Assembly: GCF_006345805.1 (NCBI RefSeq)
Contig: NC_043007.1
Span: forward strand, 5,890,001-5,954,000
DNA from: Octopus sinensis
Lineage: Eukaryota
Length of the DNA stretch: 64,000 bases
Direction of reading: 5' to 3'
Positions 1,755-59,430 of this stretch are shown here, one piece after another. Position 1 is the first letter of the stretch; each line of letters starts with the position of its first letter. Under the pieces are notes generated by a model. That model did no database searches. It was not told where the DNA came from and saw only the letters and a list, made by a program, of their open reading frames with translations. The translations under genes and the position numbers were made by a program.

Positions 1755-1806
1755 CGCTCAGAGCTGCAACAAAGTGGCGTAACACCAGCATCACGCGACT
1801 CAGTAC
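1755..1806 (+). CDS. PEBP4-like gene copy 0, exon 3 (52 nt; RSELQQSGVTPASRDSV+C)
   Basis: Bounded by tttcag| and |gtaagt, phase 0 to 1. It joins exon 4 in frame (C+CT = Pro) and is homologous to 28866-28914 and 45810-45858. Confidence 0.85.
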
Positions 1807-2044
1807 GTAAGTACTGTTTTCACTACGTTATTTACATTATTTACATTCGATGGATATTTGTCCTCATTTTTGTTGTTGTTAACACATCGTTTCTGCTGTT
1901 ATACCCTGAAGCCTTCATCAGGTGTCTTGAGGGAATTTCGAAACTGGGTTCTCATTCCTAAGGTATTTTATTATTATTATTATTATTATTATTATTATTA
2001 TTATTATTATTATTATTATTATTATTATTATTATTATTATTATT

Positions 2045-5000
2045 CAGTAGTTTATTTTTATAGCATGCTTTCACTTCACTACCGAGCGCAGCTCTGTGTG
2101 CCTTGGGTATGTGCTGTGATTTGTTGTGATGCTCTGATGGTTATTGTATGGAAAGTGTTCTGCGTAGGATGTGTGCAGTGCCTAGTAGTGCAATTTTCTG
2201 TATGTTATATGTGTTTGTAAGTCCTGGTGTTTTTGTTATGCATTTGTCTGAATATTTTTTTATCATGCCTAATGCACCTACTATGATAGGAATTGTTTCT
2301 ATCTTCAGATTCCACATTCTAGTTACTTCTATTTCCAGGTCTTTGTATTTTGAGAGTTTCTCCATTTCTTTTAGAGACACGTTGTCATCTGCCGGTATTG
2401 ATACATCAATTAGAAAGCATTTTTTTTTCTTCATGATCTCTGACAACTCTATCTGGTCTGTTGGCCTTAATTTCTCTATCTGTGTGTATCGGCATATCCC
2501 AGAGTATGGTTGCTTTCTCGTTTTCTGTGACCTTTTCTGGTGTGTGCCTATACCATCTTTTTTCTGTTGTTATTCCATAATGTTGGCATAGCTTCCAATG
2601 TATGTAGGTTCCAACTCTGTCATGTCTGTGAATATATTCCTTCTTAGCCAGGACTGGGCAACTAGAGATAATATGATTTATTGTTTCTTGTCCATCTCCA
2701 CATATTCTGCAGTTACTTGTAATATTTCTTTTCATTACATGTTTTTGGTAATTTCTGGTGGGGAGGCTTTGGTCTTGTGCTGCAATTAAAAATCCCTCTG
2801 TTTCTGCTTTGAGTCCTGAGCTTCTCAACCATTGCTGGGATTTTTCTTTGTCTATTTCTTTTGCGTTTAGTTTAGTGCAGTATTTACCATGAAGGGGCTT
2901 TTCTTGCCATCGTTTTATCATGGTTCGTTGCTGTTCTATTTTTAGTTTGGATTTCATTTGTTTTATAGCTTTTGTTGTTTCTTCATCATCTTCTTCTTCT
3001 TTATGTTTTTTAGGTGGTATGATTTCTTGTTTGTATTTGTCAGCTTCCTTAAATACTGAGAACAGTTTTTTGTTTTGCTCGTGTTTTGCTGCTATCTGGA
3101 TCAGTTTTCATTCCTTCTGAAGTAGGTATTTTTGCAGTCCTATGGTGGTTATTTTATAGTAGTTTTCCAGCTGTATAAGGCCTCTACCACCTTCTATACG
3201 TTGTATATATAGTCTTTCTATGTCAGATTTTGGGTGATGCATCCTAGATCCTGTCAGTATTTTTCTTGTTTTCCTATCTATTTTGGACAGTTCATTTCGT
3301 GTCCAGTTAAGGATATTGTAGCTGTAACTTATAACTGGGACAGCTAAAGTGTTGATATCTATTATCTTTTTTAGCATTGAGCTCTGTTTTTAGTATTGAT
3401 CTAACTCGTCTATAATATTCTTTTTTTATTTTCTCTTTCATTTGTGTGTGTTGTGTCTTATCTAGTTCATGGATTCCTAAGTATTTGTAAGTTTGGCTTT
3501 GGTCTAATTCTTTTATTTCATTGGTTTTATCTAGTGTGATGTTGTTACTCTTAACTAGTTTTCCTCTTTTCATGGTTACTTTGGCGCATTTTTCTAATCC
3601 AAATTTCATATCTATTTCTTTGGTAAATCCCTGAACTGTCATTAATTGTGTTTCCAGCTGTTAGTCATTTGCAGCGTATAGTTTTAGGTCATCCATATAT
3701 AAAAGGTGGCTGATCGTTTTGCCGTAACATTTATATCCGCATCCAGTTCTATGTAGCATATCAGATAGAGGTGACAGTCCCAAGCAGAAAAGGAATGGAG
3801 ATAGCGTGTCTCCCTGGAATATTCCTCTTCTAATGGGGATGTCTTTGGTTTTCATGAGTCCCTCTTTTGTTTGGAGGTGTAGGACTGTTTGCCATTTATT
3901 CATAGAGTGCTCTATGAATTTTATGATTGTTGGTGCTACTTTGTTAATGGCTAGTGTTTCGAGGATCCATGTGTGGGGGATGCTATCAAACGCCATCTTT
4001 TAGTCAATCCAGGCCATACTGAGGCCTTTCTTCTTTCTGTGGCTGTCTTCAGTTACGGCTTTATTAATCATTAGTTGATCTTTACAGCCATATGAGCCTT
4101 TACGGCATCCTTTCTGCTCTTCTGGGAACAGTTTGTTTCGTCCAGGTGCTTGTTCAGCCTTTGTGATATCACTGCAGTAAATGCCTTGAACATAGTAGGG
4201 AGGCAGGTTATTAGTCTGTAGTTTTCTGGTTTTGCTGTTTCATTTGATTCGGGAATTAAGATGGTTTTCCCCTTCGTGAGCCATTCAGGCATTGTCTCTG
4301 GCTCTGCTAGTATGCTGTTAAAGTTTTCAGCCAGCTTTTTGTGCATTCCTGTTAGATATTTCAACCAGAAGTTGGGGATCTTGTCATGCCCAGGTGCCTT
4401 CCAGTTGCTTAGTTTTTGCAGTGCCTGGGTGACCTCTTCAGTTGTTATGGAGGTCCAAAGTTGTTCAGATGCCGAGTTTGTTATTTTCATACTCCTTTTT
4501 TTTGGCTGTTCGTTCGCCGACCATATTTCTCTCCAGAATTCTTCCAATTCTTCTGCCGTTGGTGCTGCAGTGACTTCTATTTTATTTTTTCCCAGTTCTT
4601 GCTAGAACTTTTTGGGGTTAGAGTTGAACTTTTTGTTCTGTTCAAAGAAGCGTTGGCGTCTCTCGTACCGGCGGATCCTTTGAGCTTTGGCAAGGATATC
4701 TTGCTTCAGCTTTTCTTTTATCTCCGGCAAATCTTTTTCTGTGATGTTATATTTGCGGAGCATTTTTGTTCTCTTTTTGTTGCTCAGTAGCGTTGCTTGT
4801 TTGCTGATTTCATTAAGATTTGACAGGTCCTTTCTAATTTTTTTTATTTTGTTTTGGATGTTATTTATCCACAGGGTTTGTTTGGGTGGTGGTACTCCTG
4901 TTTGGGCGGGTTTGGGTGAGTATCCAGCTTCTTTTGTGACTGCAGTGGCTGCTGCGTATATCAAGTCATTTAGTTCAGTGATATCACTTTTTTTTGTTTC

Positions 5001-59200: not shown

Positions 59201-59322
59201 TGATATATATATATATATATATATGCGCATGCCAAATTCCTAATATGTTCACGTGTGTGTATGTATGATTTAATATAATAAATTCCTCCTAATGTAAAAA
59301 AAAAACTTTTGTGTTTTATTAG

Positions 59323-59430
59323 CTAAATGCAAGTCTGAACGAAACATTATATATACTGGGCATGTTTCATCAAGAGGCATATAAGGAAGCTAATATAGTT
59401 TACACGCATTGGATGAGGACATTTATCGGG
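59323..59430 (+). CDS. PEBP4-like gene copy C, exon 2 (exons 3-4 lie beyond the window)
   Basis: ttattag|LNASLNETLYILGMFHQEAYKEANIVYTHWMRTFIG|gtaagt. Confidence 0.88.

Follow-up and report, generated by a model that had tools for sequence, protein, structure and literature searches.

A tandem array of PEBP-fold genes with predicted secretion signals and fast-diverging mature domains in Octopus sinensis

Four small exons recur along a 64,000-nucleotide stretch of the Octopus sinensis genome (C11:5,890,001-5,954,000, on contig NC_043007.1; hereafter the window), which raises the question of whether they belong to real genes, which protein family these genes encode, and what has shaped the differences between the copies. 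An initial annotation had read them as a hidden tandem array of PEBP4-like genes whose products are secreted and probably anchored by glycosylphosphatidylinositol (GPI). The window and 180 kb of flanking sequence from C11 (244 kb in total) were modelled for every copy, and the O. sinensis assembly, comprising 2.72 Gb in 13,516 contigs, was searched. The results showed that the window covers the central part of a real tandem array of PEBP-fold genes, which carry predicted secretion signals and are for the most part unannotated. For the locus as a whole, we consider it likely that the array arose from a secreted PEBP4-like ancestor, that its products are anchored at the cell surface, and that its young copies have diversified as extracellular binding modules. 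Several findings weigh against this reading, and each of them is given below beside the step or the alternative explanation that it touches.

As shown by the exon models across the 244 kb, nine four-exon genes (G1 to G9) lie over about 210 kb of C11 (5,825,684-6,035,255), and GT/AG sites and phases are conserved at 36 of 36 exons. G1 to G7 are arranged head to tail on the plus strand, and G8 and G9 are inverted on the minus strand. Within the window lie the 3' half of G4 (unit 0), the whole of G5 (copy A) and G6 (copy B), and the 5' half of G7 (copy C); the array overruns both ends, since G4 starts 15 kb upstream and copy C ends 3 kb downstream. The four recurring exons with canonical splice sites were recovered by tblastn and blastn of the exons against the window, with start and end coordinates in agreement, and the expectation of at least four head-to-tail paralogues continuing past both edges was confirmed, seven being head to tail among the nine. 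Six genes are intact, namely G3 (214 amino acids), G4 (215), copy A (207), copy C (213), G8 (209) and G9 (209); the other three are damaged and are taken up below. Genome-wide, the paralogue count came to nine in the C11 cluster plus more distant relatives on C8 (41.41-41.51 Mb) and C9 (89.34 Mb), which carry a homologous signal-peptide exon 1 and are known from 3-kb exon loci only. Canonical PEBP exons are also present elsewhere in the O. sinensis genome. It was also observed that G9 resembles G1 and that exon 1 of G8 resembles exon 1 of G2 (C11:5994945-6035255 versus 5825684-5857989), so that the cluster ends look like an inverted duplication flanking a young block, G3 to G7.

The structure of a single gene can be followed in copy A, whose exons splice into one open frame of 207 amino acids across 9884/17682, 17789/28866 and 28914/31097, as had been predicted (window coordinates, plus strand, here and below unless stated); the donors are GTAGGT or GTAAGT and all acceptors are AG. 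Exon 1 (9690..9884) encodes a predicted signal peptide (residues 1-23/24, predicted cut after SLA) and an N-terminal extension with Cys31 and Cys47. Exon 2 (17682..17789) carries the N67 sequon together with DPDA and HW, the first half of the PEBP pocket, and is one of the two fastest-evolving exons, the other being exon 3 (28866..28914; 49 nt, phase 1), which encodes a hypervariable loop between HW and YKPP. Exon 4 with its stop (31097..31368; coding 31097-31365, stop 31366-31368) supplies YKPP, GHNRY, the rest of the PEBP fold and a C-terminal signal, and ends in STAS, DLINQRFSS and 14 further residues; an AATAAA follows at 31696. All four motifs expected for the domain were located in the protein: DPDA at 81-84, HW at 94-95, YKPP at 119-122 and NRYQ at 129-132. 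A TATA-like A/T-rich element at 9570..9590, about 115 nt upstream of the copy A ATG and near-identical upstream of copies B and C, is a putative core promoter.

We next consider the family to which these proteins belong. In the PF01161 profile search, for which the Pfam gathering cut-off is 24 bits, copy A stayed just under the threshold (22.6 bits, E 1.4e-4), and this counts against its assignment when taken by itself. Spliced G1 scored 47.1 bits (E 3.9e-12) and aligns over 153 residues with the mature domain of copy A, at 44% identity (E 8e-51); copy A was assigned to the PEBPs because of this identity to an above-cut-off paralogue, so that family membership stands by way of G1 and not by a direct hit. 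The relatives P0007, P0010, P0008 and P0005 reached 39-60 bits against the same profile. The best three matches of copy A in the PDB were all PEBPs, with non-significant E-values, and the O. bimaculoides PEBP4 isoform X1 (P0010) matched solved PEBPs in the PDB at 1.5e-8. The designation PEBP4-like also held, since the nearest named relative is this O. bimaculoides protein, to which the O. vulgaris orthologue of G9 (P0004) is 35% identical (E 2e-22); orthology to vertebrate PEBP4 rests on the automatic name given by NCBI. When 1.84 billion representative sequences were scanned by HMMER with P0003, a fragment from O. vulgaris, eight proteins were returned in all: four O. vulgaris models (P0003 itself, P0001, P0004 and P0009), two from Argonauta hians, one from Helobdella robusta and one plant FT-like protein.

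The pocket motifs divide the array. The older copies G1, G8 and G9 keep DPDEYP, DADEFP or NPDEFP, HW (LW in G9) and GxHRYQF. The full set of canonical anion-pocket motifs (DPDxP, the His of HW, GxHR) is not conserved in the young clade G3 to G7, where the first motif reads HPEAY (G3 and G4), DPDAY (copy A), VPDKY (copy B) or HQEAY (copy C). The first Asp of DPDxP is replaced in every young copy except A, and the His of GxHR in all five, which read LNHF, VSHF or HNRY. Membership of the PEBP fold stands for the family, and canonical ligand binding by G3 to G7 appears doubtful from these motifs.

The young copies differ from each other in an uneven way. Exon and intron mismatches were counted in the ten G3-G7 pairs inside single BLAST high-scoring segment pairs spanning an exon and its flanks; global alignments were set aside for this contrast, being confounded by microsatellites and non-homologous insertions. 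Mismatch was 8.2% in exon 1 against 3.4% in the flanking intron, 16.9% against 4.1% for exon 2, 30.4% against 8.1% for exon 3 and 10.3% against 8.9% for exon 4, and the excess in exons was significant in all ten pairs (P 1e-4 to 5e-22). The proportion of nonsynonymous differences (pN) in the mature domain was 0.13-0.21, compared with 0.05-0.08 in introns, again higher in ten of ten pairs (P 1e-9 to 1e-27). By the Nei-Gojobori method, the nonsynonymous rate (dN) of the mature domain was 0.14-0.25 and its ratio to the synonymous rate (dN/dS) 0.98-2.25 among the young pairs; for exon 2 alone dN/dS was at least 1.05 and up to 4.3, and undefined for one pair without synonymous change. The protein-coding parts of G3 to G7 have diverged faster than the introns around them.

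The divergence is also confined to certain parts of the protein. The 72 nt of the signal peptide show no change among G3, G4, A and B, and amino acid identity, averaged over all pairs of the nine genes, falls from 91% for the signal peptide to 77% for the tail and 53% for the mature domain; among G3 to G7 the mature domains are 59-74% identical. Most densely packed with variable columns (57-67%) are exons 2 and 3 and the first part of exon 4, which encode DPDxP, HW and GxHRY. Apart from the two 1-nt frameshifts, every net difference in exon length is divisible by three, which holds for only 20% of the indels in introns; exon indels were judged by net exon length, as BLAST gap counts split single in-frame indels arbitrarily. 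Such a pattern argues for selection that would keep an open, exportable and anchorable protein while changing its binding surface.

A different account of the same contrast is concerted evolution, in which conversion or unequal crossing-over homogenises introns, promoters, the signal exon and the tail, while the mature exons keep an older divergence with no burst of positive selection. Synonymous divergence (pS) exceeds the intron level in six of the ten pairs, a point against selection as the sole cause, and the difference may thus owe something to gene conversion that homogenises non-coding DNA. Paralogues share 97-100% identity over 250 nt of 5' flank, and similarity is mosaic: copies B and C share 99.3% identity in exon 4, 77% in exon 2 and 61% in exon 3, and the two types of exon 1 (KKED and SVAD) do not follow the exon 4 types. 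Conversion, however, would erase exon differences too unless selection or prior strong divergence protected them, so that some selection for diversity would still be needed. Moreover, dN/dS is at least 1 within error (0.98 in the lowest pair) and reaches 4.3 in exon 2, and exon 2 of copy B is unlike that of every other paralogue and was therefore not imported from one. We regard concerted evolution as the main explanation as somewhat unlikely.

The signals at the two ends of the proteins bear on where the products go. Signal peptidase follows a -3/-1 rule, and a GPI transamidase signal consists of small residues at the omega and omega+2 positions, a spacer and a terminal hydrophobic stretch. 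By a rule-based reading of the sequence, copy A has only two hydrophobic segments, at its extreme ends (about residues 11-20 and 192-205), in line with the signal peptide and terminal hydrophobic stretch of the initial annotation. The leader has Arg8 and Lys10 in its n-region, a nine-residue hydrophobic core (11-19), a mean Kyte-Doolittle hydropathy of 2.05 over residues 11-21 and S-L-A before the predicted cut after residue 23; with about 24 residues it is almost invariant in all nine genes. The Cys31/Cys47 pair is likewise present in all nine, and the N67 N-x-S/T sequon is kept by each of the seven copies that are not pseudogenes and is missing from the other two. At the C-terminus, every one of the nine genes encodes a small-residue triplet S-T-A, a polar spacer of 10 residues and a hydrophobic end of 14 residues (mean hydropathy 1.5-2.6) with nothing after it; in B and G2 this tail is encoded only beyond the premature stops, and for G1 it is restored in the O. 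vulgaris orthologue. The Ser/Thr/Pro/Ala stalk that had been proposed before the tail did not hold up, as the linker is merely 0-16 residues long and nearly absent in copy A. These features suggest that the products are probably secreted, membrane-anchored and surface-located, and that the C-terminal signal most likely directs GPI attachment.

One relative reads otherwise at its C-terminus and tells against GPI anchoring: in Argonauta a hydrophobic stretch of 17 residues is followed by 15 polar residues, and these trailing residues make the segment resemble a transmembrane anchor more than a GPI signal. For the octopus segment, too, a very short transmembrane or tail anchor is conceivable, as is cleavage or retention that would leave a soluble or intracellular protein, and the conservation of spacer and tail (77%, versus 53% for the mature domain) is higher than is usual for a GPI signal. 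The octopus copies, in contrast, end directly after the 14-residue stretch without cytosolic residues, which makes the segment too short and too terminal for a standard stop-transfer anchor; the S-T-A triplet ten residues before it fits the omega/omega+2 rule, and a leech protein likewise combines a signal, a PEBP domain, a long Pro/Thr stalk and a hydrophobic terminus. A function other than GPI attachment is unlikely on these grounds.

The damaged genes and the lost pocket residues lead to the question of whether the young copies G3 to G7 are simply functionless duplicates drifting towards pseudogenes, with pocket loss as decay. Three of the nine genes are damaged: G2 has a TAA in exon 4, G1 is frameshifted by a 1-nt deletion, and copy B carries a 1-nt deletion and an in-frame TAA in exon 1, for which reason it is a pseudogene. 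The reading of the window's paralogues as genes is therefore correct for G4, A and C, which are intact, and not for B. The replaced His of GxHR and first Asp of DPDxP described above also fit decay, as does a dN/dS near 1 in several pairs. In a public collection of 5.8 billion proteins no full-length product of any array gene was found, and the collection holds no transcript-derived proteins for the array. Between O. sinensis (C11:5815000-5874100) and O. vulgaris the exons have diverged by 0.6-1.4%, compared with 3.1% regionally, and the intact G3 (1.40%) is no better conserved than the pseudogene G2 (1.39%), so that recent purifying selection is not demonstrated. That G2 and G3 exons both lie below the regional value was noted separately; it may point to exon-like sequence mutating more slowly or being aligned with fewer errors.

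Drift, however, cannot make exons diverge two to four times faster than the introns next to them. At 9-16% nucleotide divergence, open frames of 207-215 codons survive in four of the five young genes; no splice site is damaged, and the 1-nt deletion of copy B is the one change in exon length that is not in-frame. The intact copies keep the N67 sequon and the Cys pair, the sequon having been lost in pseudogenes only, and signal peptide and tail are nearly invariant. We therefore think it improbable that the young copies are decaying remnants. As regards G1, the 1-nt deletion lies in exon 4 (C11:5836085-5836358) and removes the C-terminal tail, while the O. vulgaris orthologue is intact; it is either a species-specific loss, leaving a soluble form or a pseudogene, or an assembly error.

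Whether the array is real was checked against the independent O. vulgaris assembly OX597824.1. It contains G1, G2 and G3, followed by the beginning of G4, as a collinear stretch with unchanged gene order and about 97% identity. G1 is intact with its tail and G3 is intact in O. vulgaris, and G2 has the same stop codon as in O. sinensis as well as a lost exon-4 acceptor. The shared gene order and the shared G2 stop exclude misassembly and make the array older than the split between the two species. An assembly artefact from collapsed or expanded haplotypes of one locus, for which one might cite that the units G3 to G7 align over 14-19 kb with introns and spacers included at 92-97% identity and are rich in microsatellites and LINE (long interspersed nuclear element) fragments, is extremely unlikely, given that the units vary in length (10.8-24.7 kb), carry different indels and have distinct coding sequences (mature domains 59-74% identical), that the sole assembly gap in the region falls outside the array, with no run of N within it, and that O. 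vulgaris keeps the G1-G2-G3-G4 order with orthologue-specific sequences.

In Argonauta hians a single compact four-exon gene occupies the locus (BAAFZT010000086.1), and the 10 kb to either side contain no further copy. The annotated protein begins inside exon 1, and the frame stays open farther upstream, across a signal-like hydrophobic stretch and the first of the conserved Cys residues, indicating that this annotation is truncated at its N-terminus. In the tree, G3 to G7 form a clade (support 100/99) nested among G2, G8, G1, G9 and one Argonauta protein; the C9 paralogue branches off next, outside them, with the PEBP4-like group beyond it. The lineage-specific expansion put forward in the initial annotation is thus supported by the G3-G7 clade and by the single gene at the one Argonauta locus seen. 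Judged from these sequences, the family derives from PEBP4, its tailed form is specific to octopods, and its expansion took place in Octopus.

Returning to the reading of the array as diversified surface proteins, its steps may be set out as follows. A precursor of about 210 residues would enter the endoplasmic reticulum, lose its leader and be glycosylated at N67. The N-terminal extension of about 40 residues would form a disulfide, probably Cys31-Cys47, and the last 26 or so residues would be swapped for a GPI anchor, so that a PEBP domain of about 160 residues would be displayed on the cell surface, anchored at the outer side of the membrane. G3 to G7, the five youngest copies, would stem from recent segmental duplication of whole units of 11-25 kb. 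Their mature domains would then have diversified faster than neutral intron sequence, mostly in exons 2 and 3 and the start of exon 4, which are predicted to form the ligand pocket, while the signal peptide and the C-terminal signal would have stayed almost unchanged.

With regard to function, G1, G8 and G9 would retain the PEBP-type anion pocket; owing to the replaced pocket residues, we infer that G3 to G7 no longer bind the canonical phosphoryl ligand, and with their altered pockets they probably bind other ligands. Mammalian PEBP and yeast Tfs1 inhibit serine proteases, insect antennal A5 binds ligands, and nematodes have secreted PEBPs. By analogy, plausible roles are protease inhibition, binding of small ligands or lipids, and recognition of foreign molecules. 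The young copies may accordingly be regarded as candidate extracellular binding modules for recognition, ligand capture or protease inhibition at the cell surface. A bolder version, namely a private octopus family of GPI-anchored PEBP-fold surface proteins with a pocket under diversifying selection, serving as a variable chemotactile, immune or anti-protease system of recognition or capture, is speculative, and we hold it to be unlikely in this full form.

Current annotations miss or scramble the array. In O. sinensis, the model LOC118765305 consists of exon 1 of G1, exons 2-3 of G2 and a foreign exon; in O. vulgaris the public models fuse exons of neighbouring genes, and the models of the array are fragments or chimeras. 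The junctions themselves recur there, the exon 1/2 and exon 2/3 junctions being the same in LOC118765305, and the exon 2/3/4 junctions with the stop being the same in O. vulgaris CAI9729628.1. The public models P0001, P0002 and P0003 (O. vulgaris, O. sinensis) were observed to join neighbouring paralogues, either exon 1 of G1 with exons 2-3 of G2 or exons 2-4 of G9 with exon 2 of G8; these are either wrong predictions or products of read-through and splicing across paralogues. Full-text literature searches returned nothing relevant on PEBPs in cephalopods or molluscs, on the LOC identifiers or on GPI-anchored PEBPs, in agreement with the earlier supposition that the array is undescribed.

Besides copy A, the window contains parts of three further units, all on the plus strand. 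Exon 3 of G4 (52 nt) lies at 1755..1806, its exons 1 and 2 lying 15 kb and 5.4 kb before the window, and exon 4 at 7997..8286 encodes the latter half of the PEBP domain, then a PGSPTAEEA linker and the predicted C-terminal anchor signal, followed by the stop at 8287-8289 and an AATAAA at 8683; the spliced protein is intact (215 amino acids). The exons of copy B are at 32721..32914 (exon 1, with the lesions given above), 41083..41190 (exon 2, with the degenerate pocket motif VPDKY and the sequon lost), 45810..45858 (exon 3, by exon homology) and 48120..48403 (exon 4, the one nearly identical to that of copy C), with an AATAAA at 49037. For copy C, exon 1 (50060..50254) is intact and exon 2 (59323..59430) carries HQEAY; exons 3 and 4 lie 0.8 and 2.8 kb past the window, and the complete gene is intact with 213 amino acids.

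The introns hold much repetitive sequence. A LINE remnant with RVT_1 and zf-RVT domains occupies 20348..23766 on the minus strand in intron 2 of copy A, and similar antisense remnants lie in introns at 2406-7199, 14341-15980, 36025-39202 and 54023-56659 (minus strand); those in intron 1 of A, B and C are at corresponding positions, and so were copied along with the duplication units. An (ATAC)n microsatellite of 2.3 kb (26326..28590) stands just upstream of exon 3 of copy A, and a 0.6-kb counterpart (45140-45759) immediately upstream of exon 3 of copy B. These large microsatellites adjoin the most variable exon, which may be a coincidence or a link with instability. Other host genes in the cluster were considered and rejected: the further long open reading frames of the 244 kb that were checked against Pfam matched LINE domains (endonuclease, RVT_1, zf-RVT) or gave no match. 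A segment of 2.36 kb at C11:6020992-6023350 is open for 786 codons on both strands without a Pfam match, and is probably a palindromic or simple repeat within an intron of G9.

PEBPs have mostly been studied as slowly evolving cytosolic regulators such as RKIP and florigen. If the reading given here is true, an anchored, extracellular and fast-diversifying array would widen the known uses of the fold, and would provide an octopod-specific candidate family for cephalopod novelties, for example the chemotactile sense of the suckers or the defence of skin or mucosa. The faster evolution of exons than of introns is a clear and testable signature of selection, and six intact genes are tractable for expression mapping and binding assays.

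Compared with known systems, the array shares its fold family by sequence with the cytosolic PEBP1/RKIP, plant FT/TFL1 and Drosophila CG7054 (PDB 2jyz, 1beh, 1wkp). These, in contrast, have no signal peptide or anchor, keep a conserved anion pocket, are low-copy or slowly evolving, and act inside the cell in kinase regulation or as florigen. The O. bimaculoides PEBP4 (P0010) is closer, having a signal peptide, a Cys pair before the domain and a PF01161 domain with DPDxP, LHW and G-I-H-R-Y-Q-F, and its O. sinensis counterpart on C8 starts with a signal-peptide exon 1 homologous to that of the array. It differs in ending right after the fold without a hydrophobic tail, in keeping the canonical pocket and in lying outside the C11 array. 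The uncharacterised leech protein HELRODRAFT_173374 of Helobdella robusta (P0008) shows a similar layout, with a signal peptide, a Cys-containing N-terminal stretch, a PEBP domain (54.6 bits), a Pro/Thr/Gln stalk and a terminal hydrophobic segment; its stalk of about 130 residues, compared with the octopus linker of 0-16, its canonical pocket and its very distant sequence set it apart.

In conotoxin superfamilies and in arrays of GPI-anchored Ly6/uPAR genes, a conserved signal or pro-region accompanies a hypervariable mature part. The likeness to the octopus array is one of evolutionary mode and not of membership, the fold being unrelated: small secretory proteins in tandem, near-invariant targeting sequences, a fast mature domain and dN/dS of at least 1. 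In this respect the octopus array appears to evolve like immune or toxin gene families. Lineage-specific multiplication of PEBPs in an invertebrate is already known from the whitefly Bemisia tabaci, with 202 genes as cited in PMC10510153; that expansion belongs to another phylum and had an independent origin, and the excerpted text of PMC10510153 reports neither a C-terminal anchor nor exons evolving faster than introns. While PEBP expansions as such are known, what is new in the octopus array is a PEBP4-derived family with a predicted C-terminal anchor signal, a tandem expansion and a mature domain that has diverged faster than its introns.

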